NCBI RefSeq assembly: GCF_006345805.1
Contig: NC_043026.1
Span: 8,494,001 to 8,558,000 of the forward strand
Reading direction: 5' to 3'
Source of the DNA: Octopus sinensis
Lineage: Eukaryota
Length of the DNA: 64,000 nt
Position numbers and translations under genes: made by a program. Below the pieces are notes generated by a model. The model was given only the letters and a program-made list of their open reading frames with translations. It had not been told where the DNA came from and made no database searches. Shown piece after piece: positions 1-60,497 of this stretch; the first letter of the stretch is position 1, and every line of letters starts with the position of its first letter.

Positions 1-2098
1 CATTACTGAATATTTCCTTATTCGTTTCAGATGTAATGGAAGGGAAACGAAGACCAGAATCAAGATTTGATAATGACACAGATTCCAGAATGTTCACTTG
101 GTCCCCATCAATCTTTATGCAATGACATTCAATCAATTCAATATGTGCACACCAGTAAATATTTCCCACTTTTCTCCATATCACACCATAAGGTACTTGA
201 CTTTCCCAAACTTTATATTTCCCCAAATTTTCTTGCTTCAGTTGAAATATTTCTCGTCTGTTAGGGACCGTGACCATTATGCCTCTTCCATGTGTAAAAC
301 ACACACCACCAACTAAACTTCCTAGATCTCTGTGGCATAGCAATTCCCCATCTCTATCAAACATTTTAACATTTCCATTATTGGCTTTTTCACACACAAC
401 TGTCTTTCCTTCATCAGAGATGTCAATATCTTTCACCTGAACAAGACATTCGTCTGTTTGTAAATGACAAACAGGGAATTTTTCCCGATTAAGCTGAAAC
501 AAACCTTCAACATACAATTTATCTTTGTTGTGGCTCCCAGCAAAACGTGGACCATTACAGTTTATACTTGTGAAATCTATTTTATCTTTATAAATTCTAC
601 TATTTATAAATATTCTGTTGTATTCTCCTGTCTGTGTCAAACAGACTAAGCTGTTATAGCCAGTGAAATCACCATAACGATCCCACCATCCATAAATGTA
701 CAAATAACTGTCATCAATTGTCATGTTGTTGTATTTAATATCATCATAAGCCATGTAGTGTCTAACTGAATGCAAATACTGACCACCACTGTTGAAGAAT
801 ATTATGAATCTTCTATTGCTGACAATGATGACACCATTAGCAGTAACTATAATATTACAGATGTAATTAATAAGTCCACGTCTGTCTTTCGTTAATGTCT
901 CAGGTATGCCTATTTGTTTTATTATATTCACGGTTGAATGTTTTTCGTCTATAACGATAACATACAAATTACATTTATCTCTATATTTACTACACAACAG
1001 TTGATTGTTTGATAAAGAAGCAATACATTTATATTCATTTCTTGTCAGGTAGGTTACCGACGACAATGGGAACCCAACTTTTAAAGTCAACAATTGGGAC
1101 TTAGCACCATAAGTTGTAATGACCAGTGTGTTTCTCTGCCAACGACACATATTAATAGGAAAAACATTCAATTTGATAGAGTCCACAAGTTGACCGTCAA
1201 ATGTGAATATCTTAATGTTTTTATTATTCCAGTCATATGACGCTATCAGGTTATTTTCAATAACACACAAACGGCGAATGTACACTGGTTTTTGGTCTCC
1301 AAAACCTGAAGGGACAACGACATGTCTAGCTTTGTCAGAAACTGTCAGGTCCTGTAGATATAAAGTGGAAGACAACATTTCACTGACAGAAATGTTTCTG
1401 GAAAATACATCCACCAGGTCGATATAATAATTAAGTTGATTATTTGTAACGAGATCATTAACTAACAAATTATGATTGTTTATGGCAAACATACGGCTTC
1501 TGTCTATCAGATAAACAAATATTTTATCAATAGATCCACCGCAGAGATTGAGGGGACGTTTCACTTGGGACATTAAAACACTGGGGACCATCTTACTACT
1601 ACTATAACCACCACCACAGATACTAGTGTTGTAATGAAAGGCTATTTTCCTAGTAACAATTAATAATTTTCGTGTTTCATTTTCTATTGCTAATGATTTC
1701 ACAAACACAGGGATATTAATTGTCTTAAGTACTTCGACTTGATTATAATAATTGATGGCTAAAATATCTAAATGTGATGGATTATCACAGTAACAAACAA
1801 TTTCACATTCACCCATCTTACACACCCGTACATAAGGCTGCCTTAATGATACACTTCTCACTGTCTTTGATAGGTTTCCGATGACCCTTAATTGTTTCTG
1901 TAGGGGTAATGTGACCCCTATATGATTAGAACCCCACTAACATATATCTGTGGCTGTAGACAGCAGAGATAATCTGGGCACAATGTCTCCTTCCTCAGAA
2001 ATGCACGACAAGCAATCATGCTTGATGTCGGACACCACCAACTGTCCATTGGACAGATTACATATTTCGCCAATGACAAGTTTTTGGTCATTCTCCTT
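1..2098 (-). pseudogene. Out-of-frame remainder of paralogue A (propellers 3-5, continues beyond the window start)
   Basis: Manual translation gives KENDQKLVIGEICNLSNGQLVVSDIKHDC..., then one in-frame TAG at 1937..1939 (DIC*WGSNH vs DICRWDSNH in B and C). The frame is then open to position 1 (...GLRFPSITSETNKEIFSN), matching B and C. Confidence 0.85.
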
Positions 2099-2099
2099 T

Positions 2100-4223
2100 T
2101 CATAGATTTAGATTTTTGAAAGAAGGATTTTTAATGGGTAAACAACAGCCAGACGACTGGTCTTGATACTTGTAAAGAAGAACCCTGTTGAGTTGAGTGT
2201 CGGGGACATTAAGAGTTCCTTGGAAAACAGCAATGTGAGGGTGAACAGGGAAAGGCAGTTCCCACTGCCATTTCATTTCTCCATATAGATCGTAACATCT
2301 GAGAATAGAGTGTCTCCTGAAGAGGACATAGAAATAAACATTATCAGAGTAGATGTGACGAGGGTAGCCATAGAATGGAAGGTATTTTTGAAAAAGTTCT
2401 TCACCACATGTGGAATAAAATACCATTTTATTTTCGTTTCCATCTACGACTACAAAATTAATTGGAGTTGCAGCAATGCTGACATTATGATGTCCCAGAG
2501 AAATTCTTTTTGCAATGTCAACTTTATCTTCATTGATCAATAGGATATGGACCTCGCTTTTGTTTTCAGTGGTGGTCACAGCCAGACACTTATTTGATAC
2601 AATATGACATATTTTCATGTAACCAGTTTGCACCTTTATTAAAGGGCCTTTTCTTAGTTCAGGACAGGTGATATACTGAAACCCTTTCATTTCACGATAA
2701 AAGACCAGGAATCTGTTTGTGTTTATTCTACAAAGTGCAGAAGGTGAAGAATTAAAAGTTATATAATTTTGGCTATTTTTTCCCTCAATATCAGAGAGTA
2801 ATATAGCTTTCTTATTCCCGTAGAGCATTAATATGGAAGATGTTGACATAGGAAGAATATTTTTGACATTATAGAAATCCTCAATATATATATGGTTGAT
2901 CAGACTGGGTGTACATAGCTGGTTGCTGTAAGACGGCTTGAACCAAAAATCTTTAGTTGTCCCTATATTATGCAGAACCCCAAAATAATCAGTCAAGAAA
3001 ATAGTATCTGAGCAAACGCAAAAATACCGACATTTCATTCCAATTTCCCTCTTTGACACACCACCCTTACCTGAAATCCGATAAATAATATGTCCCTGGA
3101 GGACATAAAAATGGTTTTGGTACACAGTGATGCTGGTTGGGAGATCCAGAGAATGGGTCTCTACCTCAAATATCTGCTGGCCATCCACATCGTAACAGGT
3201 AACTCTGTTAATATTAGCAAATGCTATTAACAGGTTACCTTGTGGACCAACAGCAATATCTGCAGGTATCTCTTTGCCAATAAATTGAGTGATAATTCTA
3301 TTATCTTCCCAATCAATGAGGAATATGGTCTTACCAAACAGTTCTACACCTATAAGCGTAGAATGTTCCAAATAAGAAACCAAGATTAATCCTAGCTGAA
3401 TTCTTTTGATTTTAAAACTTAAAGGGTTGATAATAAGAATCATTTTTTTGAAGGGGAGGGTGGCCAGGACTGTGTCTTCACTGATTCTAGTAAAATCAGT
3501 GACAGAAGATGAGCAATGAACTTCATTTCTGTTGCCGTCTCTTGTTATACAACATATTGTCATACAGTGGCGGGAATATGTTACAATACCCCCTTGTATG
3601 ACAACAATATTGGATATGGGGTTGCTTAAGTCTTCACCAGATTCCTCAATCTTTGCTTCTCTGGTTACAACCGAAGAATGTGGCCGAAATTTCTTGATTA
3701 TTTTTGGTGCCTCAATGATTTTGTGTTTGTCTTGCAAAACATTTGTCTTAATGTATTGTTCCAAAAAACATTCAAGTTTTCCTATAATACTAAAATCTTG
3801 GCTGTAATCATATTCCTTAATGTCTTTCTGCAAAATTTCTATTCTCTGTGTAAAATCTTTTAGAAAATTATTTTCATCCAAACCAACACTTTTTAAAAAA
3901 GTACATATTTTTTCCCGAGAATTTATCAACAAATTAATTTTGTCTTCATAGGCATTGAACCTTGTATAATATACACGTTTGTCCAAAATATTTCGTCTTC
4001 CAATTATTTCCCAGTTTTTAGGGTCTCCTTTATGTCTTTTTTGTTTTGTTGTTGACTGAAATGAAGATCTTTTCTCGGACATTTCTCTCCTTGAACCGTC
4101 ATCTCTCTCATATTTACACCTTTTATTGTCAACTCCTTCTTCATCCCATTTTGGTGTCGAGTTCCTTAAAGCCCTTTTCAGAGGGATAAGTTTCCTTAAA
4201 GTATTTTCAGTCTGGTCTTCCAT
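2100..4223 (-). CDS. Multi-beta-propeller (NHL/TolB-like) protein, paralogue A, truncated 707-aa ORF (N-terminal region plus propellers 1-2)
   Basis: 707-aa ORF collinear with the first 707 aa of the intact 1781-aa paralogue at 26652..31997. It ends at NLNL* because an 8-nt net deletion (ctccttttc-a-tagatttag here vs ctccttttc-tttgagtcg-tagatttag in copy C) shifts the frame. Confidence 0.85.
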   Translation of the reverse strand: MEDQTENTLRKLIPLKRALRNSTPKWDEEGVDNKRCKYERDDGSRREMSEKRSSFQSTTKQKRHKGDPKNWEIIGRRNILDKRVYYTRFNAYEDKINLLINSREKICTFLKSVGLDENNFLKDFTQRIEILQKDIKEYDYSQDFSIIGKLECFLEQYIKTNVLQDKHKIIEAPKIIKKFRPHSSVVTREAKIEESGEDLSNPISNIVVIQGGIVTYSRHCMTICCITRDGNRNEVHCSSSVTDFTRISEDTVLATLPFKKMILIINPLSFKIKRIQLGLILVSYLEHSTLIGVELFGKTIFLIDWEDNRIITQFIGKEIPADIAVGPQGNLLIAFANINRVTCYDVDGQQIFEVETHSLDLPTSITVYQNHFYVLQGHIIYRISGKGGVSKREIGMKCRYFCVCSDTIFLTDYFGVLHNIGTTKDFWFKPSYSNQLCTPSLINHIYIEDFYNVKNILPMSTSSILMLYGNKKAILLSDIEGKNSQNYITFNSSPSALCRINTNRFLVFYREMKGFQYITCPELRKGPLIKVQTGYMKICHIVSNKCLAVTTTENKSEVHILLINEDKVDIAKRISLGHHNVSIAATPINFVVVDGNENKMVFYSTCGEELFQKYLPFYGYPRHIYSDNVYFYVLFRRHSILRCYDLYGEMKWQWELPFPVHPHIAVFQGTLNVPDTQLNRVLLYKYQDQSSGCCLPIKNPSFKNLNL

Positions 4224-22137: not shown

Positions 22138-22330
22138 GGCTTTCACCTCATTATAGTGATCCCTATGTCTCCCCCGTTTTACTTCTTTATTACCTCATAC
22201 TCTCCCCTCTTTCAGTAAATACATCGTTCGCCCCTTTTTTTTTGCTGTAGTTCCCCCGTCTCTCTCTCTCTCTCTCTCTCTCTTCCTCTCTCTCTCTTCC
22301 TCTCTCTCTCTCTCTCTTCCTCTCTCTCTC

Positions 22331-22365
<35 letters not shown>

Positions 22366-22906
22366 GTCTATCTCTTTGTCTGTCTGTCTCTCTCTCTCTC
22401 TCGCTTCCTCTCTTTCCCTCTCTCTCTTCCTCTCTCTCTTCCTCTCTCTCTCTTCCTCTCTCTCTCTCTCTCTCTCTCTCTGTCTGTCTATCTCTTTGTC
22501 TGTCTGTCTGTCTCTCTCTCTCGCTTCCTCTCTTTCCCTCTCTCTCTTCCTCTCTCTCTCACTCTCTCTCTCCCTCCCTCTCTCCAACTATCTTCTCGTC
22601 AGAAGACAGAGAGAGCAATAGGTGCCCTGCGATCATGCTAGAATTAGAAGCCAAGCCAAGTACATGCAAGTTGACAGTTTTCATAGAAAGATGCAGAACA
22701 TTTCGGGAAGCAGCTGCAGAAATATTGGAAGGCAAAGTGGACCTCGGCAGAATTTGAACTCAGAACATAAAGACAGGCAAAATGGCGCTAAGCATTTCAC
22801 CCAGCACACCAACGGTTCTGTTCACTCGCTTCCTTCAGGTCTTGGAATACTGAAATTTCTAAAGATTAGACTCAATGGCTGAATATCATTTCCCAAATTT
22901 TTTTTC

Positions 22907-22953
<47 letters not shown>

Positions 22954-22965
22954 TCTCTCTCTCTT

Positions 22966-23001
<36 letters not shown>

Positions 23002-23023
23002 CTCTCTTCCTATCTCTCTCTTC

Positions 23024-23071
<48 letters not shown>

Positions 23072-23450
23072 TCCTCTCTCTTCTTCCTCTCTCTTCCTCC
23101 CTCTCTCTCTCTCTCTCTTCTCTCTCTCTTCCTCCCTCTCTCTCTCTCTCTTCCTCTCTCTCTTCCTCCCTCTCTCTTCCTCTCTCTCTCCCTCTCTCTC
23201 TCTTCCTATCTCTCTCTCTTCCTATCTCTCTCCCTCTCTCTCTCTTCCTATCTCTCTCTCTTCCTCCCTCTCTCTCTCTCTTCCTCCCTCTCTCTCTCTT
23301 CCTCTCTCTTCCTCTCTCTCTCTTCCTCCCTCTCTCTCTTCCTATCTCTCTCTCTCTCCTCCCTTTCTCTCTCTTCCTCTTTCTCTCTCTCTCCCTCCCC
23401 CTCTCTCCCTCCCTCCCTCTCTCTACTCTTCTTTACTTCGTCTCTCTCTT
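22100..23450. repeat. (CT)n-rich microsatellite tracts
   Basis: Two long CT/CTT tracts, ~22100..22590 and ~22905..23450. Confidence 0.95.
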
Positions 23451-26362: not shown

Positions 26363-26414
<52 letters not shown>

Positions 26415-26415
26415 T

Positions 26416-26450
<35 letters not shown>

Positions 26451-26651
26451 TAATGAATACACACATACCATATATGTAATGTATATACAGAAAGAGATAG
26501 AGTGTATGTGTTGAAGAATATCACAACAATAATTGATAGAATAATCATTAGTGTGTAGAATGCAACGTCAGTGATGTAGGTTCAATTTCCAGGTGAACAC
26601 GGAATCAATAACAACAACAACAACATCAAATTTTAATATTTCTGAAAATAT

Positions 26652-29600
26652 TTATTTGTCATAATAAAAAAAAGCAAAAGATTGACGTCCAGGAATAATT
26701 CCAAAAACCATCAAAGAATTTTCTGAAACATCCAAACCAAGAACTGTGAAAACTTCATTATCGTCACCCCTGAGGAGCAAATATTTCTGAATATTTTCAG
26801 ACGTCTGCTGTTCAATATTTTCAAATGTTTGGTGTTCAATGTAAGCAGGTATTTGGTAAATACTGTTATCTTTATCTGTTATATAAACATATCCAGCACA
26901 CGTTGTTAGATATGGTTTGTAAATATAATAATCTGGATCGATGGGGAGTTTAATACTCCTGACCAAATGTTCGCGATACCAACAGACATCATAGTCCCCA
27001 CTACTCCATCCCTCCCTCTCCTCCTTCACCACAACAATCTCACCACCAGATGTCACTACTATACCACACACAACTGACTCTACGTCTTCGTCTTCTACCT
27101 CCAAAACTCCAGAATCCACTTTACAATTGTATTTACATGTCACACCATCAACATCAACAATATCTATGTAGTAGTTGTAGTTTCTCACACCTTTAGTTAT
27201 GTCTCTAATATAATGACCACCACACACGAGTTGACTGTCGTTGTATTTATAAATCCTGTTGTAGAATTTTTCAGTTTTGATGGTTTTTAAACAACAGAGA
27301 TCCCTGTTGAAGAACATCAGTTCTTCACCAAAGGTGACAATAAAACATTCATCTGTCCACTGACATATGTCCAGTGGTGGTTGTGGTAGTTGTTCATGTT
27401 GAAGTATGTCCACTGTTGTTGTTGTTGTTCTGATTAATGTGACACTTTCTCGAAATATCAACACACTCACATTCTCATCTAACTTAATTAGTTTACTGTT
27501 CTGGTCCCTAATGTCCATAAAATCATAATTAACAGGTTCCTCAAATGCAGGAATGGAAAAAGGGACCATTGCTGTCCTATATGGAAGTCTCCTCACTGAT
27601 ATTTCATCAATTCCTGAATTATTAATCTCCGCTATGTAATTACCACATCTCACCTTTAATCTACCTTTACCAATTATTTCACCTGATTTACCTCTTCTTC
27701 TTCCTCCTCCATCTCCATCTCCTCCTCTGTATTCCAATTTATTAATTAATTCATTACTGAATATTTCCTTGTTCGTTTCAGATGTAATGGAAGGGAAATG
27801 AAGACCAGAATCAAGATTTAATGACGACACAGATTCCAGAATGTTCACTTGGTCCCCATCAATCTTTATGCAATGACATTCAATCAATTCATTATGTACA
27901 CACCAGTAAATACCCGCCACTTTTCTCCATATTACACCATAAGGGATGAGACTCGACCAAACTTGAGATGTCTGCAAATCTTCTCCATTCAGATGAAATA
28001 TTTCTTTCCTTTTAGGAACCGTGGCCATTATGTGTGATTCTTGTGTAAAACACACACCACCAACTAAACTTGCAACATTTCTGTGACATAGCAACTGGCC
28101 GTCTTCATCGAATATTTTAACATTTCCATTATTGGCTTTTTCACACACAACTGTCTTTCCTTCCTCAGAGACATCAAAATCTTTTACTTGAACAGGACAT
28201 TTGTCTGTTTGTAAACGAGCAACCGGGAATCTTTCCCGACTAACTTTGAATAAACCTTCAACATATAATTCACTACTGCAGCTTCCAACAAACCTTACTC
28301 CTTTACAGTTTATACAGGAGAAATCTACTGTATTTTTATAAATTCTGTCATTCAAAAATATTCTCTGGTATTCCCCATTCTGGGTCAAACACACAATGTT
28401 ATCATACCCAGTGTAACCAATATACCTTTCCCACCGACCATGAACAAACAAATAATTGTCATCAATTGTTATGTTATCGTAATCACTATTATACCACATG
28501 TAGTGTCTAATTGAATGTAAATACTGACCATCACTGTTGAGAAAAATTATGAAAGTATCATTGTTGACAATGATGACATCTTCATCAGTAACTGTAATGT
28601 CACAGATGTAATTAATATAGTTATCACCATGTTTGTATCTCGTTAATAATTTCTCAGGTATGTATATTTCTCTTCTTATATCCACGGCTGAATGGGCTTC
28701 ATCAATATGAAAGACATACAAAGTACGTTCGTCTTCCCATTTATTACACACCAGCCAATTGTTTGACAAAGAAGTGACATATTTATACCTATCCCTTGTC
28801 TGATAAGTTACCAACGACAACGGGAATTCCACTTTTAATGTCAACAGCTGGGATTTATCATCGCCAGTTGTAATGACCAGTGTGTTTGACTGCCACCGAC
28901 ACATATTGATACTATCAACATTCAGTCTGATAGAGTCCAGAAGCTGACCGTCAAATGTTAATATCTTGATGTTTTTATTATTATTGTCATATCCTGCAAT
29001 CAGGTTGTTTTCAATAACAACAAAACAAATAATGTACACTGGATATTTGTCTCCAAAACCTGGAGGGACAACAACATGCCTAGCTTTGTCAGAAACTGTC
29101 AGGTCCTGTAGATATAAAGTGGAAGACAACATTTCACTGACAGAAATGTTTCTGGAAAATACATCCACCAGGTCGATATAATAATTAAGTTGATTATTTG
29201 TAACGAGATCATTAACCACCAAATTATGATCATTTATAGCAAACATACGGCTATTATCAATAAGATACACAAACATTTGGTCAACAGATCCACCATAGAG
29301 ATTAGGGGGACGTGTCACTTGGGGCATTAAAACACTGGGGACCATCTTAATAATACTACTATTCCTGACATGGCCACCACCACTGGTACTAGTGATATAC
29401 TGAAATGCTTTTTTCCTAGTAACAATTAATAACTTTCTTGATTCATTTTCAATTGATAATGATTTCACAAAAACAGGGATATTAATTGTCTTAATTACTT
29501 CGACTTGATTATAATAATTGATGGCTAAAATGTCTAAATGTGATGGTTTATCACAATAACAAACAATTTCACATTCACCCATCTTACACACCCGTACATA

Positions 29601-31997
29601 AGGCTGCCTTAATGATACACTTCTCACTGTCTTTGATAGGTTTCCGATGACCCTTAATTGTTTCTGTAGGGGTAATGTGACCCCTATATGATTAGAATCC
29701 CATCGACATATATCTGTGGCTGTAGACGGCAGAGATAATCTAGACACAATGTCTCCTTCCTGAGAAACGTATAACAAGCAATCATGCTTGATGTCAGACA
29801 CTACTAACTGTCCATTGGACAGATTACATATTTTGCCAATGAGAAGTTTTTGGTCTTTCTCCTTTACTTTGAGTCGTAGATTTAGATTTCTGATGTAAGG
29901 ATTTTTGATGGGTAAACGACAGCCAGACGACGGGTCTTGATACTTGTAAAGAAGAACCCTGTTGAGTTGAGTGTCCGGGACATAAAGAGTTCCTTGGAAA
30001 ACAGCAATGTGAGGGTGAACAGGGAAAGGCAGTTCCCATTGCCATTTCATTTCTCCATATAGATCGTAACATCTGAGAATAGAGTGTCTCCTGAAGAGGA
30101 CATAGAAATAAACATTATCAGAGTAGATGTGATGAGGGTAGCCATATAATGGAAGGTATTTTTGAAAAAGTTCTTCGCCAGATGTGGAATAAAATACCAT
30201 TTTATTTTCGCTTCCATCTACGACTACAAAATTAATTGGAGTTGCAGCAATGCTGACATTATAATGTCCCAGAGAAATTCTTTCTATAATGTCAACTTTA
30301 TCTTCCTTGATCAAGAGGATATGGACCTCGCTTTTGTTTTCAGTGGTGGTCACAGCTAAACACTTATTTGATACGATATGACATAGTTTAAAGTAATCAG
30401 TATGGACTTTCATTAAAGGGCCTTTCATTAGCCCGGGGCATGTGATACACTGAAATTCTTTGTTTTCACGGTAAAACACCAGAAATCCTTTAGAATTCAT
30501 TCTACAAAAGCAAGAAGGAATCTCTAGGAAAGTTGAATTATTTTGGTTAATTATTTCTCCAGTCTCAGTGAATAATATAGCTTTATTATTCCTGTAAAAT
30601 ATTAATATAGAAGATGTAGACATAGGTAGAATATTAGTAATGTTGTAGCAATCTTCAATATAAATATAGTTGTTCAATGTTGGGGTCCATAGCTGGTGGT
30701 TATATGACTGCCTGGGCCAAAAGTCTTCATTTGTTCCAATGATATGAAGGACATCAAAATAATCGGTTACAAAAATGTTTTCTTTGCCAACAGAAATATG
30801 GCGGCATTTCATGCCAATTTCTCTTGTTCTCACAGCACCTGTACCTGAAATCCGATAAATAATATGTCCCTGAAGGACATAAAAATGGTTTTGGTACACT
30901 GAGATGTGGCTTGGAATGTCCAGGGAATTGGTATCCACCTCAAATAACTGCTGGCCATCCACATTGTAACAGGTAACCCTGTTAATATTGGAAAAGGATA
31001 CTAAGAGTTTATTTTGTGCTCCTACAGCAATATCTGTTGGTGTTTCTTTGGTTATGAATTCGTATTTTATTCTATTCTCTTCCCAGTCAATGACGTATAT
31101 GGTCCGACCAAACAGTTCTACACCTATAAGCATAGAATGTTCCAAATAAGAAACCAAGATTAATCCTAGCTGAATTCTTTTGATTTCCAAACTTAAAGGG
31201 TTGATAATAAGAATCATTTTTCGGAAGGGTAGGGTGGCCAGGACTGTGTCTTGACTGATTCTGGTAAAATCAGTCACAGAAGATGAGCAATGAACTTCAT
31301 TTCTGTTACCGTCTCTTGTTATAAAACATATTGTCATACAGTGGCGGGAATATGTTACAATACCCCCTTGTATGACAACAATATTGGATATTGGGTTGCT
31401 TAAGTCTTCACCAGATTCCTCAATCTTTGCTTCTCTGTTTACAACCGAAGAATGTGGCCGAAATTTGTTGATTATTTTTGGTGCCTCAATGGTTTTGTGT
31501 TTGTCTTGCAAAACATTTGTCTTCATGTATTGTTCCAGAAAACATTCAAGATTCGCAAAAATGACAAAATCTTGGCTGTAATCATATTCCTTAATGTCTT
31601 TCTGCAAAATTTCTATTCTCTGTGTAAAATCTTTTAGAAAAGTATTTTCATCCATTCCTATACTTTTTAAAAAAGTACATATTTCTTCCCGAGAATTTAT
31701 CAACAAATCAATTTTGTCTTCATATGCATTGAACCTTGTATAATATACACGTTTGTCCAAAATATCTCCTTTTCTAATTATTTCCCAGTTTTTAGGGTCT
31801 CCTTTATGTCTTTTTTGTTTTGTTGTTGGCTGAGATGAAGCTCGTTTCTCAGACATTTCTCTCCTTGAACCATCATCTCTCTCATATTTACACCTTTTAT
31901 TGTCAACTCCTTCTTTATCCCATTTTGGTGTCGAGTCCCTTAAAGCTCTTTTCTGAGGAGTAAGGCTTCTTGAAGTGTTTCCTCTTGGGGCTTCCAT
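26652..31997 (-). CDS. Intact single-exon 1781-aa protein with about six tandem NHL/TolB-like beta-propellers, paralogue B
   Basis: 5346-nt uninterrupted ORF. Recurrent blade motifs (TDIAVGAQNKLLVSFSNINRVTCYNVDG; TDICRWDSNHIGVTLPLQKQLRVI; LDICQWTDECFIVTF) resemble the NHL-like propellers of molluscan B-box/NHL proteins. No signal peptide, transmembrane segment, RING or B-box is visible. Confidence 0.9.
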   Translation of the reverse strand: MEAPRGNTSRSLTPQKRALRDSTPKWDKEGVDNKRCKYERDDGSRREMSEKRASSQPTTKQKRHKGDPKNWEIIRKGDILDKRVYYTRFNAYEDKIDLLINSREEICTFLKSIGMDENTFLKDFTQRIEILQKDIKEYDYSQDFVIFANLECFLEQYMKTNVLQDKHKTIEAPKIINKFRPHSSVVNREAKIEESGEDLSNPISNIVVIQGGIVTYSRHCMTICFITRDGNRNEVHCSSSVTDFTRISQDTVLATLPFRKMILIINPLSLEIKRIQLGLILVSYLEHSMLIGVELFGRTIYVIDWEENRIKYEFITKETPTDIAVGAQNKLLVSFSNINRVTCYNVDGQQLFEVDTNSLDIPSHISVYQNHFYVLQGHIIYRISGTGAVRTREIGMKCRHISVGKENIFVTDYFDVLHIIGTNEDFWPRQSYNHQLWTPTLNNYIYIEDCYNITNILPMSTSSILIFYRNNKAILFTETGEIINQNNSTFLEIPSCFCRMNSKGFLVFYRENKEFQCITCPGLMKGPLMKVHTDYFKLCHIVSNKCLAVTTTENKSEVHILLIKEDKVDIIERISLGHYNVSIAATPINFVVVDGSENKMVFYSTSGEELFQKYLPLYGYPHHIYSDNVYFYVLFRRHSILRCYDLYGEMKWQWELPFPVHPHIAVFQGTLYVPDTQLNRVLLYKYQDPSSGCRLPIKNPYIRNLNLRLKVKEKDQKLLIGKICNLSNGQLVVSDIKHDCLLYVSQEGDIVSRLSLPSTATDICRWDSNHIGVTLPLQKQLRVIGNLSKTVRSVSLRQPYVRVCKMGECEIVCYCDKPSHLDILAINYYNQVEVIKTINIPVFVKSLSIENESRKLLIVTRKKAFQYITSTSGGGHVRNSSIIKMVPSVLMPQVTRPPNLYGGSVDQMFVYLIDNSRMFAINDHNLVVNDLVTNNQLNYYIDLVDVFSRNISVSEMLSSTLYLQDLTVSDKARHVVVPPGFGDKYPVYIICFVVIENNLIAGYDNNNKNIKILTFDGQLLDSIRLNVDSINMCRWQSNTLVITTGDDKSQLLTLKVEFPLSLVTYQTRDRYKYVTSLSNNWLVCNKWEDERTLYVFHIDEAHSAVDIRREIYIPEKLLTRYKHGDNYINYICDITVTDEDVIIVNNDTFIIFLNSDGQYLHSIRHYMWYNSDYDNITIDDNYLFVHGRWERYIGYTGYDNIVCLTQNGEYQRIFLNDRIYKNTVDFSCINCKGVRFVGSCSSELYVEGLFKVSRERFPVARLQTDKCPVQVKDFDVSEEGKTVVCEKANNGNVKIFDEDGQLLCHRNVASLVGGVCFTQESHIMATVPKRKEIFHLNGEDLQTSQVWSSLIPYGVIWRKVAGIYWCVHNELIECHCIKIDGDQVNILESVSSLNLDSGLHFPSITSETNKEIFSNELINKLEYRGGDGDGGGRRRGKSGEIIGKGRLKVRCGNYIAEINNSGIDEISVRRLPYRTAMVPFSIPAFEEPVNYDFMDIRDQNSKLIKLDENVSVLIFRESVTLIRTTTTTVDILQHEQLPQPPLDICQWTDECFIVTFGEELMFFNRDLCCLKTIKTEKFYNRIYKYNDSQLVCGGHYIRDITKGVRNYNYYIDIVDVDGVTCKYNCKVDSGVLEVEDEDVESVVCGIVVTSGGEIVVVKEEREGWSSGDYDVCWYREHLVRSIKLPIDPDYYIYKPYLTTCAGYVYITDKDNSIYQIPAYIEHQTFENIEQQTSENIQKYLLLRGDDNEVFTVLGLDVSENSLMVFGIIPGRQSFAFFYYDK

Positions 31998-32004: not shown

Positions 32005-32034
32005 CTGTAAAGAAATATAAAGAAAACATTTAGC
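32005..32034 (-). promoter_or_regulatory. 3' splice acceptor upstream of paralogue B
   Basis: Minus strand ttttctttatatttctttacag|attcactATG. Confidence 0.7.
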
Positions 32035-33899: not shown

Positions 33900-34325
33900 T
33901 ACTACCTATTTCTTTACTACCCACAAGGGGCGAAACACAGAGAGGACAAACAAGGACAGACAAACGGATTAAGTCGATTATATCGACCCCAGTGCCTAAC
34001 TGGTACTTATTTAATCGACCCCGAAAGGATGAAAGGCAAAGTTGACCTCGGCAGAATTTGAACTCAGAACATAGCGACAGACGAAATACCTATTTCTTTA
34101 CTTCCCACAAGGGGCTAAACAGAGAGGGGAAAAACAAGGACAGACAAAGGGATTAAGTCGATTATATCGACCCCAGTGCGTAACTGGTACTTAATTTATC
34201 GACCCCGAAAGGATGAAAAGCAAAGTCGACCTCGGCGGAATTTGAACTCAGAACGTAACGGCGGACGAAATACGGCTACGCATTTCGCCCGGCGTGCTAA
34301 CATTTCTGCCAGCTCACCGCCACAG
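33900..34325 (-). mobile_element. SINE dimer
   Basis: Same family as 10182..11332. Confidence 0.8.
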
Positions 34326-35895: not shown

Positions 35896-35927
<32 letters not shown>

Positions 35928-36731
35928 TGTATACATGTATGTATGTATGTGCGTATTTATGTATGTATGTATGTATGTATGTAAGTGTGTATGTATGTAT
36001 GTATGTATGTGTGTATGTATGTATATATGCAAGTGTGTATGTATGTATGTATGTATGTATGTATATATGTATGTATGTATGTGCGTATTTATGTATGTAT
36101 GTATGTATGCATGTATGTATGTATGTGTGTATGTATGTATGTATGTATGTGTGTATGTATGTATGTATGTATGTATGTATGTATTTATGTATATATGTAT
36201 GTATTTATGTATGTATGTATGTGTGTATGTATGTGTGTGTGTATGTATGTATGTATGTGTGTATGTATGTATGTATTTATGTATGTATGTATGTGTGTAT
36301 GTATGTATGTATGTATGTATGTAAGTGTGTATGTATGTATGTATGTATGTATGTGTGTATGTATGTATATATGCAAGTGTGTATGTATGTATGTATGTAT
36401 GTATGTAGTATGTATGTATGTATGTATGTATGTATGTATGTATGTATGTATGTATGTGTGTATGTATGTATGCATGCATGTATGTATGTATGTATGTATG
36501 TATGTATGGGTGTATGTATGTATGTATGTGTGTGTGTATGTATGTATGTATGTATGTATGTATGTATGTATGTATGTATGTAGTATGTATGTATGTATGT
36601 ATGTATGTATGTATGTATGTATGTATGTGTGTATGTATGTATGTATGTATGTATGTATGTATGTATGTATGTATGTATGTATGTATGTATGTGTGTATGT
36701 ATGTATGCATGCATGTATGTATGTATGTATG

Positions 36732-36764
<33 letters not shown>

Positions 36765-37340
36765 GTGTATGTATGTATATATGCAAGTGTGTATGTATGT
36801 ATGTATGTATGTATGTATGTATATATGTATGTATGTATGTGCGTATTTATGTATGTATGTATGTATGTAAGTGTGTATGTATGTACTTATGTATGTAAGT
36901 GTGTATGTATGTATATATGCAAGTGTGTATGTATGTATTAATATATTTACTACAGTCATATTTACCAGTCAATGATCGTGTTTCCCTTCCAATCTGGGGG
37001 GCCTTTGTATCTCAGCAAGATCTGTGCCAGCTCAACTTGTTGAAGGAGCGGGAACGAAGTGACTTGTGCTATTAATGGTGTCTCACAACTGTAACTTTGC
37101 CAACGAGAAGCTTATAGGAACGTGGGTGTTACATTGGTTGTGTCTTTATATGTGTGTATATGTTGTAAAGTGTATGTATGTATGTATGTATGTGTGTGTG
37201 TGTGTGTGTGTGTTTCAATTACAAATGTATGTTATGTATGTTTTATGCTTGATTAAAGCTATGTGTGTGTATGTATGTATGTATGTATGTATGTATGTAT
37301 GTATGTATATATGTATGTATGTATGTATGTAGTATGTATG

Positions 37341-37374
<34 letters not shown>

Positions 37375-37380
37375 TGTATG

Positions 37381-37414
<34 letters not shown>

Positions 37415-37738
37415 TGTATGTATGTATATATGTATGTATGTATGTATATATGTATATATGTATGTATGTATGTATGTAGTATCTATGTATGTGTGTCTGT
37501 ATGTATGTATGTATGTATGTATGTATGCATGCATGCATGTATATATGTATGTATGTATGTATGTATGGATGTATGTATGTATGTATGTATGTATATATGT
37601 ATGTATGTATGTATGTATGCATGCATGCATGTATATATGTATGTATATATGTATGTATGTATGTATATATGTATATATGTATGTATGTATGTATGTAGTA
37701 TGTATGTATGTGTGTCTGTCTGTATGTATGCATGCATG

Positions 37739-37772
<34 letters not shown>

Positions 37773-37916
37773 TGTATGTATGTATGTATGTATATATGTA
37801 TGTATGTATGTAGTATGTATGTATGTATGTATGTATGTATATATGTATGTATATATGTATATATGTATATATGTATGTATGTATGTATGTAGTATGTATG
37901 TATGTATGTATGTATG

Positions 37917-37950
<34 letters not shown>

Positions 37951-38059
37951 TGTATGTATGTATGTATGTGTGTATATATGTATGTATGTATATATGTATA
38001 TATGTATGTATGTATGTATGTAGTATGTATGTATGTGTGTCTGTATGCATGCATGCATG

Positions 38060-38095
<36 letters not shown>

Positions 38096-38370
38096 TGTAT
38101 GTATGTATGTATATATGTATGTATGTATGTATGTAGTATGTATGTATGTATGTATGTATGTATGTATGTATGTATGTATATATGTATGTATGTATGTATG
38201 TATATATGTATATATGTATGTATGTATGTATGTAGTATGTATGTATGTATGTATGTATGTATGTATATATGTATGTATGTATGTATGTATATATGTATGT
38301 ATGTATGTATATATGTATATATGTATGTATGTATGTATGTAGTATGTATGTATGTGTGTCTGTATGTATG

Positions 38371-38402
<32 letters not shown>

Positions 38403-38414
38403 CATGCATGCATG

Positions 38415-38445
<31 letters not shown>
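35880..38445. repeat. Two ~1.1-kb (TATG)n tracts
   Basis: ~35880..36940 and ~37255..38445; they generate the many MYVC/IHTY pseudo-ORFs. Confidence 0.95.
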
Positions 38446-38447
<2 letters not shown>

Positions 38448-44769: not shown

Positions 44770-44997
44770 TGGGTATATGTATGTATGTATGTATATGTAT
44801 GTATGTATATGTATGTATGTGTGTATGTATATGTATGTATATGTATGTATGTATGCATGTATATATGTATGTATGTATGTGTGTATGTATGTATATGTAT
44901 ATATGTATGTATGTATGTGTATGTATGTATGTATGTATGTATGTATGTGATGTATGTATGTATGTATGTATGTATGTAATGTGTGTATGTATGTATG

Positions 44998-45031
<34 letters not shown>

Positions 45032-45467
45032 TGTATGTATGTATGTATGTATGTATGTATGTGTATGTATGTATATATGTATGTATGTATGTATGTATAT
45101 ATGTATGTGTATGTATATATGTATGTATATATGTATGTATGTGTGTATGTATATGTTTGTATATATGTATGTATATATGTATGTATATATGTATGTATGT
45201 ATGTATATATGTATGTATGTATGTATATATGTATGTGTGTATGTATGTATGTATATATGTATGTATGTATGTGTGTATGTATATGTTTGTATATATGTAT
45301 GTATGTATATATGTATGTAGGTATGTCTGTATGTATGTATGTATGTATGTATGTATATATGTATGTATATATGTATGTATGTATGTATGTATATATGTAT
45401 GTGTGTATGTATATATGTATGTATATATGTATGTATGTGTGTATGTATATGTTTGTATATATGTATG

Positions 45468-45501
<34 letters not shown>

Positions 45502-45653
45502 TGTATGTATGTATGTATGTATATATGTATGTATGTATGTATATATGTATGTGTGTATGTATATATGTATGTATATATGTATGTATGTGTGTATGTATAT
45601 ATGTATGTATATATGTATGTATGTGTGTATGTATATGTTTGTATATATGTATG

Positions 45654-45687
<34 letters not shown>

Positions 45688-45750
45688 TACATGTATGTAT
45701 GTATGTATGTATGTATGTATGTATGTATGTATGTATATATGTATGTATGT
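44770..45750. repeat. (TATG)n tract
   Basis: Seen directly. Confidence 0.95.
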
Positions 45751-46494
45751 TAAAGCATTCCAAATATATTTTTATTCACGTACAGAAAGCAGGCAAAAAG
45801 CCTAAAACAAGTGGTTGTTGAACAATAAGCATTGTTCTATGGAGGTATTGTTGGAAATGAAGTAAAGAAAGAAAGAAAGACAGAGATATGAGTCAGAGAG
45901 GTGGGGGTCAGAGATAAGTCATCGCTGATAAACATATGTACGTATATACATACTAAAACACACACACACTGTTGCAACAAAGCACACACATACACCACAC
46001 TACAACATACACATAAGCCTCACTCATGCACACATACACATATGTACACAGTCCTACATATACTTGAAACATGACCCGGACAAAGTAGCGCCCACATGTC
46101 TAGAAGCTTCGCTCTGATGTTTTGTAAAAATTACATGGGCTGTTGCCGCGGTAACAGCTTTGCCCATTTCAACAAATTGAGCTTTCACGATATTCTGAAG
46201 ATTGAAAAAATTTGAGGCTGAAGTTGAAATCCTGTCACTGGCTTTGGTAATTATTACTTTGAAAATAATCTTAATTAACACACAATTTAATAATATATAT
46301 ACATCGTTAAACATTTTCCAGTTTTACTTCAAACATGAATATACTAATTGCAGCGTGGAAGGTGTTTATAAGCCATTTAAAACACACACAAAAACGTTAG
46401 ATTCACTTCAACATTTAGATTTAATTTGCCAAAATATTTTCGTTGCTTTGAGACTGCGATCTGTTCACTGACAAAATTCAGTGTTGCATAATTA

Positions 46495-53520: not shown

Positions 53521-53544
53521 AAAAACGCTTCTAAATAAGAAAGT

Positions 53545-54499: not shown

Positions 54500-57400
54500 A
54501 TGGAAGACCGGATGGGAAATAGTTCAACACTCACATCCCAGAAAACAGCTTTATGTCAATCAGCAACAAAAAGTGTTGAAGAAGGAATGAACAGCAAAAA
54601 GTGTAAATATAGGAGAGAGAATGACTCAAGGAGAGAAATGAGACAGAAAGGAGACCCTAAAAACTGGGAAATAATTAGAAAACGAGATGTTTTGGACAAA
54701 CACATATTTTATACAAGGTTCAATGCATATGAAGACAAAATTAATTTGTTGATAAATTCTCGGGAAGAAATATATACTTTTTTAAAAAGAATAGGAATGG
54801 ATGAAAATACTTTTCTAAAAGATTTTAGAAAGAGAATAGAAAATTTTCAGAAAGACATTAAGGAATATGATTATAGCCAAGACTTTACTATGTTTGGAAA
54901 ACTGGAATTGTTTTTGGAAAACTATTTAAAGACAAATGTTTTACAAGACAAACACAAAACCATTGAACCACCAAAAATAATTAAAAAATTTCGGCCTCTT
55001 TCTCCAGTTTTGACCAGAGAAGCAAAGATTGAGGAATCTGGTGAAGACTTAAGCAACCCAATATCCAATATTGTTGTCATACAAGGGGGAATTGTAACAT
55101 ATTCCCGCCATTGTATGACAATATGTTGTATAACAAGAGACGGCAACAGAAACGATGTTCGTTGCTCATCTTCTGTCACGGACTTTACTAGAATCAGTCA
55201 AGACACAGTCCTGGCCACCCTCCCCTTTAGAAAAATGATTCTTATTATCAACCCTTTAAGTTTTAAAATCAAAAGAATTCAGCTAGGATTAATCTTGGTT
55301 TCTTATTTGGAACATTCTGCGCTTATAGGTGTAGAAATGTTTGGTCGGACCATATACGTCATTGACTGGGAAGAGAATAGAATAAAATACGAATTCATAA
55401 CCAAAGAAACCCCTTCAGATATTGCTGTAGGAGCACAAAACAAACTCTTAGTATCCTTTTTCAATATTAACAGGGTTACCTGTTACAATGTGGATGGCCA
55501 GCAGGTATTTGAGGTGGATACCAATTCCCTGGACATCCCAACCCACATCTCTGTGTACCAAAACCATTTTTATGTCCTCCAGGGACATATTATTTATCGG
55601 ATTTCAGGTACAGGTGCTGTGACAACAAGAGAAATTGGCATGAAATGCCGCCATATTTCTGTTGGCAAAGAAAACATTTTTGTAACCGATTATTTTGATG
55701 TCCTTCATATCATTGGAACAAATGAAGACTTTTGGCCCAGGCAGTCATATAACTCCCAGCTATGGACCCCAAGATTGAACAACTATTTTTATATTGAGGA
55801 TTGCTACAATGTTACTAATATTCTACCTATGTCTACATCTTCTATATTAATATTCTACAAGAATAATAAAGCTATTTATTCACTGAGACTGGAGAAATAA
55901 TTAACCAAAATAATTCAACTTTCCTTGAGATTCCTTCTTGCTTTTGTAGAATGAATTCTAAAGGATTTCTGGTGTTTTACCGTGAAAACAAAGAATTTCA
56001 GTGTATCACATGCCCTGGGCTAATGAAAGGCCCTTTAATGAAAGTCCATACTGATTACATTAAACTATGTCATATTGTATCAAATAAGTATTTAGCTCTA
56101 ACCACAAATGGAAACAAACACGAGGTCCATATCCTCTTGATCAAGGAAGATAAAGTTGACATTATAGAAAGAATTTCTCTGGGACATTATAATGTCAGCA
56201 TTGCTGCAACTCCAATTAATTTTGTAGTCGTAGATGGAAACGAAAATAAAATAGTATTTTATTCCACATGTGGTGAAGAACTTTTTCAAAAATACCTTCC
56301 ATTCTATGGCTACCCTCATCACATCTACTCTGATAATGTTTATTTCTATGTCCTCTTCAAGAGACACTCTATTCTCAGATGTTACGATCTATATGGAGAA
56401 ATGAAATGGCAGTGGGAACTGCCTTTCCCTGTTCACCCTCACATTGCTGTTTTCCAAGGAACTCTTTATGTCCCGGACACTCAACTCAACAGGGTTCTTC
56501 TTTACAAGTATCAAGACCCGTCGTCTGGCTGTCGTTTACACACGAAAAATCCTTACATCAGAAATCTAAATCTACGACTCAAAGAAAAGGAGAATGACCA
56601 AAAACTTGTCATTGGCAAAATATGTAATCTTGCAAATGGACAGTTGGTGGTGTCCGACATCAACCATGATTGCTTGTTATACATTTCTAAGGAAGGAGAC
56701 ATTGTGTCTAGATTATCTCTGCCGTCTACAGCCACAGATATATGTCGATGGGATTCTAATCATATAGGTGTCACATTACCCCTACAGAAACAATTAAGGG
56801 TCATCGGAAACCTATCAAAGACAGTGAGAAGTGTATCGTTAAGGCAGCCTTATGTCCAGGTGTGTAAGATGGGTGAATGTGAAATTGTTTGTTATTGTGA
56901 TAAACCATCACATTTAGATATTTTAGCCATCAATTATTATAATCAAGTCGAAGTAATTAAGACAATTAATATCCCTGTGTTTGTGAAATCATTAGCAATA
57001 GAAAATGAATCAAGAAAGCTATTAATAGTTACTAGGGAAAAAGCATTTCAGTACATCACTAGTACCAATGGTGGGGGTCATGTCAGGAATAGTAGTAGTA
57101 TTAAGATGGTCCCCAGTGTTTTAATGTCCAAAGTGAAACATCGTTCCAATCTCTGTGGTGTATCTTCTGATAAAATGTTTGTTTATCTGATAGACAGTAG
57201 TCGAGTTTTCACCATAAATGACTATAATTTGGTGGTGAGAGATTACATTACAAGTAATCAACTTGATATTCATGTCGACCTGGTAGATGTATTTTCCAGG
57301 AACATGTGCGTGAGTGAAATGTTGTCTTCTAAATTGCATCTCCAGGATCTGACAGTTTCCGATGAAGCCCGACGCATTCACGTTGCTTCCCGGTCTTTTG

Positions 57401-57595
57401 TAGATAAGCAACAAGTGGATACTCAGAGTTTGGTTATTACTGAAAACAACCTGATCGCGGGATTCGACAGGAGGAATAAAAACATCAAGATATTAACATT
57501 TGATGGCCACCTACTGGACTCGGTCAAATTGAAGGTCAACAATATCAAGATGTATCACTGGCACCCAAATGCCCTGGTTATCACAACCGATGATG

Positions 57596-57639
<44 letters not shown>

Positions 57640-59850
57640 GGTAATGAGAAATGTCGACTGTTGACCTTAAAAGTTGAATTTCCATTGTCGCTGGTAACTT
57701 ACCAGACGATAGATAGATACGAATGTATCGCTTCTCTGTCGGACAATCAACTGGTGTGTATTAAACGGGAAGATGAATGTATTTTGTATGTTGTTGACAT
57801 TGACGAAATCCATGCGACTGTGAATGTAATAAAACAAATACATTTCTCTCAGGTACAATCCTGGAGAGACATCTATGATCTTATAATTACAGCCGGTGAT
57901 GTCATCATTGTCACTAACTCAAGATTCCTAATTTTCTTCAACCGTGATGGTCAGTATTTACATTCAGTCAGACATTACATGGGGTATGTCAATAAATATA
58001 ACAACATGATAACTGATGACAGTTACCTGTACATTTATGGTCAGTGGGACAGGTATTGTGACTACAAAGGATATAAAAATATTGTGTGTTTGACCCAGAC
58101 TGGTGAATACGACAGAATATTTTTGAATGACAGAATTTACAAAGATAAAGTAGATTTCTCCTGTATAAACTGTAATGGATTAAGGTTTGTTGGAAGCCAC
58201 AGGCACACTAATAAATTCTATGTCGAAGGATTGTTTAAGCTTAGTCGGGAGAGATTCCCTGTTACTCATTTGCAAACAGACAACTATTCTGTTCAGGTGA
58301 AAGATTTTGATGTCTCTGAGGAAGGAAAGACAGTTGTGTGTGAAAAAGCCAATAATGGAAATGTTAAAATATTTGATAGCGATGGGGAATTGCTATGCCA
58401 CAGAGACCTAGGAAGTTTAGTTGGTGGTGTGTGTTTTACACATGGAAGAGGCATAATGGTCACGGTCCCTAACAGACGAGAAATATTTCAACTGAAGCAA
58501 GAAAATTTGGGGAAATGTAAAGTTTGGGAAAGTCGAGTACCTTATGGTGTAATATGGAGAAAAGTGGGAAATATTTACTGGTGCGCACATATTGAATTGA
58601 TTGAATGTCATTGCATAAAGATTGATGGGGACCAAGTGAACATTCTGGAATCTGTGTCGTTATTAAATCTTGATTCTGGTCTTCGTTTCCCTTCCATTAC
58701 ATCTGAAACGAATAAGGAAATATTCAGTAATGAATTAATTAATAAATTGGAATACAGTGGCGGAGATGAAGTGGAAAGAGGTAAATCAGGTGAAATAATT
58801 GGTAAAGGTAGATTAAAGGTGAGATGTGGTAATTACATAGCGGAGAGTAAGCCAGGAATTGATGAAATATCAGTGAGGAGACTTCCATATAGGACAGCAA
58901 TGGTCCCTTTTTCCATTCCTGCATTTGAGGAACCTGTTAATTATTTTTATGGAAACATTAAGGACCGGAATAGTAAACTAATTAAGTTAGATGAGAATGT
59001 GAGTGTGTTGATGTTTCGAGAAAGTGTCACATTAATCAGAACAACAACAACAACAGTGGACATACTTCAACATGAACAACTACCACAACCACCACTGGAC
59101 ATATGTCGGTGGACAGAGGAATGTTTCATTGTCGCCTTTGGTGAACAACTGATGTTCTTCAACAGGGATCTCCGTCGTTTAAAAACCATCAACAGTGAGA
59201 AATTCTACAACAGGATTTATAAATACAATGACAATCAACTCGTGTGTGGCGGTGGCCACTATGAAAGCAATAACAGTGAAGGTGTGTGTGGTGGTTATTA
59301 TGTTGGGCAAATTAAGAGTGGGCAACACAGTTATTATGTAGATGTAGTTGAGATTGATGGTGGCACATGTGAATACATTCATGAAGTTTGTTCCGGGGTG
59401 AATGAAGAGGTGGAGAATGTTGTGTTTGTAATGGATATAGTAGTGACATCTGGTGGTGATACTGTTGTTGTGGAGGAGGAAAGGGAGAGATGGAGGCGGG
59501 ACGTTTGCTATTATTTCCGATGGTACAGGGAGCAGTTGGTTAGGGTTATAAAGCTCCCAGCGTATCGAAATTCTTATTTTTATATACCTTTTCTAACCAC
59601 TCAAAGACAATATGTTTATATAACGGATAAAGATAATAATATTTACCAAATACCTGAATATATTGCACAGCAAACATCTACAGGTATTGAATACCTGACA
59701 TTTGATCGTATCAGCCAATATCTCCTCCTTAGGGGTGAAGATAATGAAGTTTACAAAATTCTTGGTTTTGATATTTCGGACAATTCTTTCATGGTTTTTG
59801 GAATCATTCCAGGACGTCAATCATTTGCTTTCTTTCATTATGACAAATAA
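54500..59850 (+). CDS. Paralogue C of the multi-propeller gene, split by a single 1-nt deletion (ORFs 54500..55900 and 55951..59850; 1783 aa if repaired)
   Basis: gctatttattcactgag at 55871 vs gctatattattcactgag in B: one A is missing between 55875 and 55876. Both flanking ORFs align to B end to end and share the C-terminus VFGIIPGRQSFAFF.YDK. Confidence 0.85.
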
Positions 59851-60283: not shown

Positions 60284-60314
<31 letters not shown>

Positions 60315-60434
60315 CCTATCTATCTATCTGTTTATCTATCTATCTATCTCTCTATTTATCTATCTATCTATCTGTCTTTCTATCTATCTATCTATCTGTC
60401 TGTCTATCTATCTATCTATCCATCCATCTATCTA

Positions 60435-60466
<32 letters not shown>

Positions 60467-60497
60467 TCTTTGTGTATCTATCTATCTGTCTTTCTAC

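Follow-up and report, generated by a model that had tools for sequence, protein, structure and literature searches.

Members of the TRIM-NHL group (TRIM71/LIN-41, TRIM2, TRIM3, Brat, Mei-P26, and Thin) carry one six-bladed NHL propeller each, joined to a RING/B-box/coiled-coil (RBCC) head, and act as E3 ligases or translational repressors. NHL propellers are substrate-binding modules for RNA or protein. In molluscs, RING/B-box/NHL-like proteins such as CAE1315789.1 (P0081, 656 amino acids (aa)) also combine a head with one propeller. This study examined a 64,000-nt stretch of the Octopus sinensis genome (contig C30, 8494001-8558000; hereafter the window), in which a gene on the minus strand at positions 26652-31997, called gene B, encodes six tandem propeller units without a RING or B-box. 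The explanation that best accounts for the data as a whole, to which we assign a probability of about 0.8, is that gene B represents a RING-less six-unit NHL-like-propeller protein of Octopoda, which has been duplicated to about 100 loci and would act as a soluble multivalent binder.

Gene B shares with the mollusc RING/B-box/NHL-like proteins both the propeller and the signature of its first two blades (…VV/IV.SD……F..DG…….P.GIC.W……VTLP). Whereas these relatives have one propeller and a head, gene B has six units, no RING/B-box, and N-terminal helices with no detectable similarity to their coiled coil. The same signature is found in single-propeller relatives within Octopus, each encoded by one open frame: L020 (996 aa), in which RING/B-box-type cysteine motifs precede the propeller; L019, which has a long disordered N-terminus; and C6:8215845-8217701 (634 aa). 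To the TRIM-NHL proteins, gene B is linked via mollusc intermediates, direct similarity being non-significant. A word-based search for homologues of the Sepia TRIM-like protein returned only four matches, which is no gauge of the size of that family. Locus L018 (C21:16208500-16217500, 1,836 aa) was considered as a multi-propeller intermediate and rejected, as it has no propeller; it is a single-frame RING/B-box/coiled-coil head followed by a Ser/Thr-rich low-complexity tail of about 1,400 aa.

Multi-propeller chains are found in two further kinds of protein. LRP2 and LRP4 contain several six-bladed YWTD propellers per chain and were among the best Foldseek matches to gene B, but they are extracellular proteins with a signal peptide, a membrane anchor, and EGF modules between the propellers; gene B has none of these and shows no sequence relationship to them. 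The DDB1/CPSF160/SF3B3 scaffolds and the tandem-WD40 proteins (IFT-A, UTP, EML, and WDR90) are intracellular multi-propeller adaptors that match gene B at the level of the fold. Proteins of the DDB1/CPSF160 type and tandem-WD40 proteins are built from seven-bladed WD40-type propellers. They are conserved eukaryotic genes, and their sequence likeness to gene B is limited to a WD40-like blade of unit 5.

A preliminary description of the locus, made from the letters of the window, had reported an uninterrupted coding exon of about 5.3 kb for gene B and a blade-1/blade-2 signature recurring six times in its product, and both observations held. The open-frame scan returned 1,781 codons plus a stop, and at the base composition of the gene B strand, 1,781 codons would escape a stop by chance with a probability of about 1e-61. 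All 12 motif strings were present, at aa 201/241, 451/494, 719/760, 987/1029, 1269/1312, and 1502/1541, with spacings of 250, 268, 268, 282, and 233 aa between successive units. The same description had called the gene single-exon, which applies to the coding sequence only, since a probable splice acceptor lies 7 nt before the ATG. This motif is retained even in paralogues at 59-63% protein identity, and annotated homologues splice into the acceptor before the ATG and then read 'FT' ahead of the Met. The conserved acceptor thus indicates that the protein lies in one coding exon, while the gene need not have only one exon; a 5' exon probably exists further upstream. The first exon of the O. vulgaris model for the gene B orthologue ('MCIGCGG') is doubtful in this respect because it maps into a (TATG)n array.

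The internal repeats of the gene B protein are visible only to profiles, since BLASTP of the protein against itself gave no internal matches. When an alignment of 17 full-length family members was compared with itself by hhalign, off-diagonal matches were obtained between aa 736-828 and 1514-1618 (93-95% probability), aa 1029-1144 and 1541-1656 (82%), aa 975-1074 and 1257-1367 (80%), and aa 727-841 and 996-1114 (55-70%). A profile of units 3-6 was run by hmmsearch against 1.84 billion representative proteins, and the next-best matches outside the family were single-propeller RING/B-box/NHL and NHL proteins. Unit 4 matched the RING/B-box/NHL protein P0081 of the cuttlefish Acanthosepion (Sepia) pharaonis (E 9e-7); the other matches of the profile were the RING/B-box/NHL proteins P0087 and P0089 and the NHL proteins P0085 (from a bivalve), P0086, and P0090. 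Each of these outside relatives carries one propeller opening with the blade-1/blade-2 signature (ICxW...VTLP), for example '…LVVIPKKFIVVSDRHSGALKKFGFDGQMLEEFELHSPPHGICLWANYEVVVTLPENKQI'.

The same relationship was obtained from the side of the single propellers. A profile was built from six of them, taken from cephalopod and bivalve proteins (five with Pfam NHL, three with RING and/or B-box), and it matched gene B at six separate sites, with E-values from 2e-21 to 7e-5, in register with the six signatures (Table 1). A joint profile of five single propellers and unit 4 of gene B reached the solved NHL domains of TRIM3, TRIM2, TRIM71, Thin, and Brat (E 1e-27 to 1e-19). These profile data indicate that the six tandem units derive from the six-bladed NHL-like propeller of mollusc RING/B-box proteins, in agreement with the earlier proposal that the protein was built by propeller multiplication. 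Searches of other kinds were empty: the Pfam scan of the whole protein and of each unit gave nothing significant, and phmmer of the protein against PDB sequences found nothing.

For structure prediction, AlphaFold2 was applied to two overlapping halves of the protein, covering aa 1-980 and 690-1781, with an alignment of 30 sequences for each half. Complete six-bladed propellers were modelled for units 1, 2, 4, and 6, whereas unit 3 is a probable propeller and unit 5 a partial one. For the expected number of about six propellers, there are thus six profile sites and four complete models, with about five blades in unit 3 and a partial unit 5. In the model of unit 5, about three blades (aa 1270-1391) are followed by a disordered Gly/Arg-rich loop and then by three more strands. 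The first three blades of unit 3 form the most conserved stretch of the family, with invariant residues V732...Y800. Unit 4 is the closest to the single NHL-like propellers, yet it is among the units that vary most between paralogues. Unit 6 is acidic (net charge -23) and variable in its second half, and the helical region at aa 83-162 is the most variable part of the family.

Foldseek against the PDB, suggested in the preliminary description as a check together with structure prediction, returned multi-propeller proteins only (IFT-A, LRP4, LRP2, DDB1, CPSF160, and UTPs; E 1e-23 to 1e-14), in line with the four confident propellers. The matches had template modelling scores (TM-scores) of 0.1-0.2 and about 9% identity; the scores are low because the models do not fix the arrangement of the domains. 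Separately, the first blades of unit 5 (aa 1255-1342, window positions ~27972-28235) matched WD40 repeats from STAND/CHAT proteins of bacteria (E 6e-7 to 1e-3) and, in a comparison of the family-only profile with the PDB, a solved Nostoc WD40 fragment. This likeness could reflect convergent blade motifs or a mosaic origin; the Pfam WD40 scan of gene B gave no match.

A diverged, conserved housekeeping scaffold of the DDB1/CPSF160 or IFT-A WD-like kind, not derived from TRIM-NHL, would agree with DDB1, CPSF160, IFT-A, and UTP proteins being the best Foldseek matches and with the WD40 matches of unit 5 (E 6e-7 among the 1.84 billion representatives and 4e-4 against the PDB). We consider this origin hardly credible, as Foldseek matches with such low TM-scores and identity show only that several propellers are present, and the sequence-profile matches link every one of the six units to NHL-like propellers. 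Moreover, the hmmsearch of the 1.84 billion representatives found no full-length orthologue outside Octopoda, which also means that no 1:1 orthologue of a conserved multi-propeller gene was recovered there, and about 100 copies would be unexpected for a gene of that kind.

Regarding the NHL-like-propeller protein itself, the preliminary description had noted the lack of a TRIM-type RING and B-box, and this was supported at each level searched. Pfam found neither domain in the gene B protein, and the Pfam annotation of homologues contained RING or B-box in none of 53. In tblastn of the RING/B-box parts of three relatives against the window, only non-significant matches were obtained (lowest E 0.3), and the lone 14-aa B-box match (E 0.41) falls in a 66-nt tandem repeat. 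Comparison of the N-terminal region with the pre-propeller (coiled-coil) parts of TRIM-like relatives by profiles revealed no similarity (0.4% probability). The gene B protein also has no signal peptide, hydrophobic N-terminus, or membrane-like segment that we could find, and no Pfam match to EGF or Ldl_recept_b. Judged from its sequence, the product is probably soluble, non-enzymatic, and cytoplasmic or nuclear, the intracellular location being deduced solely from the absence of a signal peptide and hydrophobic segments.

The window contains three family copies, designated A and B on the minus strand and C on the plus strand. The arrangement given in the preliminary description was correct, including the head-to-head orientation of B and C, whose start codons are 22.5 kb apart, but its view that all three have uninterrupted exons was not. 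Paralogue A is frameshifted by the loss of about 8 nt at ~2099-2102, and paralogue C by the loss of a single nucleotide at ~55876; gene B is therefore the only intact copy of the three. Both paralogues have 75-83% protein identity to gene B.

The three copies considerably understate the scale of the family, which comprises about 100 loci genome-wide, about half of them on one small chromosome. A search of the O. sinensis genome with unit 3 gave at least 163 matches, and about 115 loci were counted among those listed. Contig C30 (15.1 Mb) carries 49 of these, at positions from 1.5 to 15.1 Mb; many further loci are on small unplaced contigs, some resembling duplicate haplotigs, and a few are on C1, C2, C9, C10, C25, and C27-C29. 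Around the window, eight copies in mixed orientation lie within 125 kb. About 30 loci are in open frames of at least 1,650 aa, while most others are shortened or contain stops. Many copies are nearly equidistant from gene B, with 85-88% identity in unit 3.

The suggestion of a lineage-specific protein was supported by the distribution of relatives. Strong database relatives came from O. vulgaris, O. sinensis, and O. bimaculoides, with one from Argonauta hians (P0055, 1,913 aa). In the hmmsearch, all matches below E 1e-10 whose source was looked up were from Octopus or Argonauta, and no strong relative came from the cuttlefish that is the source of P0081, whose proteome was in the searched library. 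In the tree, the lineage P0057/P0099 is a deep singleton, kept 1:1 between species and also encoded by a single coding exon; Argonauta is sister to the remaining Octopus copies; several old lineages, such as P0046/P0132, are retained 1:1 across Octopus species; and a recent burst includes genes B and C. The literature, searched by topic and LOC identifiers, gave no description of the family, and its database members are all 'uncharacterized'. The authors of the preliminary description had likewise recognised this architecture in no characterised family, and none was found by the Pfam, PDB sequence, and literature searches. The fold and the module are already known, and the architecture and its expansion are undescribed in Pfam, the PDB, and the retrieved literature.

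Two types of N-terminus, 'MEAPRG/MEDQ…' and 'MEKINEENK…', were observed in the family, each preceded by a different acceptor-like sequence. Loci L005-L010 (C30, 3.46-9.65 Mb) were compared with gene B and L002-L004 for this feature, and among the copies of the 'MEKINEENK…' type upstream homology extends over more than 1.8 kb. Public O. vulgaris models were seen to fuse neighbours: P0002 (2,526 aa) consists of two family copies joined, P0006 joins a C2H2 zinc-finger gene to a family copy, and P0011 joins a DUF4371 (transposase-like) segment to one. Many other gene models represent only fragments (1,000-1,600 aa), as expected if the underlying copies are frameshifted.

How the copies spread was examined from their flanks. 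Within the window, homology among A, B, and C is limited to the gene and about 150 bp upstream of the ATG, and between B and C it reaches about 290 bp past the stop, where it ends at a microsatellite; no intergenic homology was seen among the three in the window despite a synonymous divergence (dS) of about 0.27. A gene-sized block of this kind, the near-equal distance of many copies from gene B, and their mixed orientations could suggest that the copies are part or cargo of a mobile element, as in a retrocopy burst or transposon cargo. However, when 16 further family copies were compared with their flanks, the homology was graded and grew with relatedness: distant copies share 38-160 bp and others 470-1,040 bp, while in close copies the homology reaches as far as 1.2 kb on the downstream side and, upstream, covers all of the flank that was retrieved, more than 1.8 kb. 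No fixed termini common to the copies were found in this comparison, in which target-site duplications were not searched for, and Pfam detected no transposase, reverse transcriptase, or integrase domain in the gene B protein. The splice acceptor before the ATG is conserved, which a processed retrocopy would not retain; the copies are concentrated on one chromosome; and gene B is collinear with its O. vulgaris orthologue (L022, OX597841.1) over about 30 kb at 95-98% identity. A mobile origin is thus very unlikely. The graded flanks without fixed termini, together with the collinearity with O. vulgaris, instead indicate spread by segmental duplication.

Synonymous divergence is uneven along the genes, which indicates gene conversion: between the units of one gene pair, dS ranges from 0.07 to 0.70. 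Between gene B and L022, the proportion of synonymous differences (pS) was 0.17 in the N-terminal 195 codons, 0.08 in unit 1, and 0.01-0.02 in units 2-6, and this roughly tenfold N-terminal value points to a recent conversion tract at the 5' end in one of the two species. Taken together, the gene arose within Octopoda and was multiplied by DNA-level segmental duplication with gene conversion.

Selection was estimated in two comparisons. Gene B and its O. vulgaris orthologue are both intact frames of 5,343 nt, with a ratio of non-synonymous to synonymous divergence (dN/dS) of 0.38; 63.5 non-synonymous and 44.5 synonymous changes were counted, against a neutral expectation of about 85 and 23. 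Among 14 intact recent copies, the corresponding ratio of differences (pN/pS) was 0.63 overall. By region, the values were 0.27-0.5 for units 1-3, 0.75-0.9 for the N-terminus, 0.9-1.1 for aa 1621-1740 of unit 6, and 1.0-1.3 for aa 1081-1140 of unit 4. Family-wide conservation is highest in units 3 and 5 and lowest in units 4 and 6 and the N-terminus. These data demonstrate that propellers 1-3 are under purifying selection, and that the N-terminus and the latter halves of propellers 4 and 6 are free to differ from copy to copy.

The overall ratio of 0.63 and the frameshifts or stops in two of the three window copies and in most genomic loci would also be expected of a mostly decaying, functionless family, derived from a formerly useful gene amplified in a repeat-rich, recombination-prone small chromosome and with gene B as a recent survivor that no longer has a role. 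We regard this as improbable, since about 30 loci keep frames of at least 1,650 aa although a single such frame has a chance probability of about 1e-61, and both members of the orthologue pair are intact, with non-synonymous changes significantly below the neutral prediction. In addition, the low ratios of units 1-3 and the maintenance of deep lineages (P0057/P0099, P0046/P0132, and others) in 1:1 correspondence across Octopus species argue against general decay.

Several points nevertheless weigh against the reading of gene B as a functional six-unit NHL-like-propeller binder. The family-only profile fails to reach the solved NHL domains in the PDB (TRIM71 at E ~1), and Pfam NHL (PF01436) stays below threshold on the whole protein and on every unit, the best value being E 0.2 (12 bits) for unit 1; owing to these shortfalls, the NHL link is transitive, though consistent. 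The two units with the highest sequence conservation, 3 and 5, were modelled worst, and unit 5 may not close as a propeller. The predicted template modelling scores (pTM) of the two halves, 0.35 and 0.55, are uninformative on the relative arrangement of the propellers. The overall pN/pS of 0.63 and the broken state of most loci mean that much of the family may be drifting, and pN/pS values close to 1 in individual segments are no proof of positive selection.

Concerning function, the architecture suggests a multivalent intracellular binder and possibly a diversified recognition repertoire, as the preliminary description had supposed for the binding role. By analogy with NHL propellers, which bind RNA or protein, each propeller would provide a binding face, and the chain as a whole would act as a multivalent adaptor. 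The conserved units may hold a common partner, and the variable units may give each paralogue its own ligand specificity. As the RING is absent, the protein could not ubiquitinate by itself, and it might act by sequestering, clustering, or scaffolding its ligands. The birth-and-death pattern would fit a recognition repertoire diversified against, for example, viruses or transposons.

The finTRIM and NLR repertoires of fish comprise tens to hundreds of clustered paralogues shaped by birth-and-death and gene conversion, with a conserved core and variable ligand-side domains. They differ from the gene B family in keeping an effector (RING or NACHT), whereas no effector is recognisable in the latter. 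An extended proposal, which is unlikely in its full form, is that TRIM-NHL genes of octopuses gave rise to a new RING-less six-propeller class of intracellular recognition proteins, with about 100 genes filling much of one small chromosome. In this proposal, one partner shared by all members would bind to the conserved propellers 1-3, while a range of RNA or protein ligands would be recognised by the hypervariable propellers 4 and 6, making the class an invertebrate counterpart of the vertebrate finTRIM/NLR systems on a different scaffold.

The positions of the family copies, of the parts of gene B, and of the NHL-like profile matches are collected in Table 1.

Table 1. Features of the 64,000-nt window and matches of the NHL-like profile in the gene B protein (window position 1 is C30:8494001).
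Feature	Window position	Strand	Residues (aa)	Description
Paralogue A	2..4223	-	1 to ~1415	Frameshifted; runs off left window edge
Segment after stop	26366..26651	-		Conserved, 3'-untranslated-region-like; ends in (TCTA)n/(TA)n; flank comparison
Gene B	26652..31997	-		Intact coding exon, 1,781 codons + stop; open-frame scan
Unit 6	26655..27557	-	1481-1781	Predicted six-bladed propeller with insertions; ~24 strands; predicted local distance difference test (pLDDT) 85-93, aa 1471-1781
Unit 5	27558..28247	-	1251-1480	Partial/degenerate propeller, ~3-4 blades, ~12-15 strands
Unit 4	28248..29081	-	973-1250	Predicted six-bladed propeller; ~24 strands; pLDDT 80-88, aa 973-1247
Unit 3	29082..29897	-	701-972	Probable propeller, ~five blades, 18-20 strands; pLDDT 60-80 at aa 720-840, <50 after
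Unit 2	29898..30692	-	436-700	Predicted six-bladed propeller; 24 strands; pLDDT ~80-87, aa 440-686
Unit 1	30693..31412	-	196-435	Predicted six-bladed propeller; ~24 strands; pLDDT ~80, aa 201-428
Helical region	31512..31751	-	83-162	Four predicted helices, low to moderate confidence; pLDDT ~55
Basic disordered N-terminus	31752..31997	-	1-82	Net charge +9, contains KQKRHK; pLDDT 21-34
Polypyrimidine tract + AG	32005..32030	-		Probable splice acceptor (…tttctttacag/attcactATG), 7 nt upstream of gene B ATG
Paralogue C	54500..59850	+		Full length; frameshifted
NHL-like profile match			195-387	94%; E 2e-7
NHL-like profile match			469-682	71%; E 4e-5
NHL-like profile match			709-841	97%; E 4e-10
NHL-like profile match			981-1297	99.4%; E 2e-21
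NHL-like profile match			1279-1350	64%; E 7e-5
NHL-like profile match			1518-1776	97%; E 3e-11

Among the remaining open frames of the window, only a tail resembling open reading frame 2 (ORF2) of long interspersed nuclear elements (LINEs) was found. It is a 194-aa frame at 6126-6710 on the minus strand, upstream of paralogue A, which is similar to the C-terminal tail of LINE ORF2 ('…ISWEDRRTNVSMLQEA…LRWSGHVVRM…'), ends with a C2H2-type knuckle, and is a retrotransposon remnant. Very large microsatellite arrays give rise to spurious open frames (300-440 aa) in more than one phase; the arrays observed were (TATG)n of 2.5 kb at 35898-38447 and of 1 kb at 44776-45750, (TCTA)n of 0.65 kb at 59969-60623, and (TC)n of 1.2 kb at 22259-23449. 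A unit of about 184 bp resembling a short interspersed nuclear element forms a six-copy tandem array at 10223-11332 and has scattered copies at 84-93% identity at 7184-7553, 33903-34273, 46494-47047, and 63057-63484. Long-period tandem repeats are located at 7865-9167 (327 bp x4), 47577-48602 (254 bp x4), 50941-51709 (388 bp x2), and 53543-53886 (112 bp x3). ARAGORN detected no tRNA genes over the window.

Cephalopod genomes are known for their expansions of protocadherins, C2H2 zinc-finger proteins, and G-protein-coupled receptors. With about 100 loci of 5.4 kb each, the family of gene B would rank among the larger lineage-specific expansions in Octopus, and it offers a clear route from the known TRIM-NHL propeller module to a new architecture with six propellers per chain and no ligase head. 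The finding is also relevant to annotation, because current gene models fuse or split many of the copies. If the copies are expressed, the family would be a tractable case for the building and diversification of multivalent propeller arrays, an example of gene conversion and birth-and-death evolution centred on one small chromosome, and, as little is understood of octopus immunity, a candidate system for recognition inside the cell.

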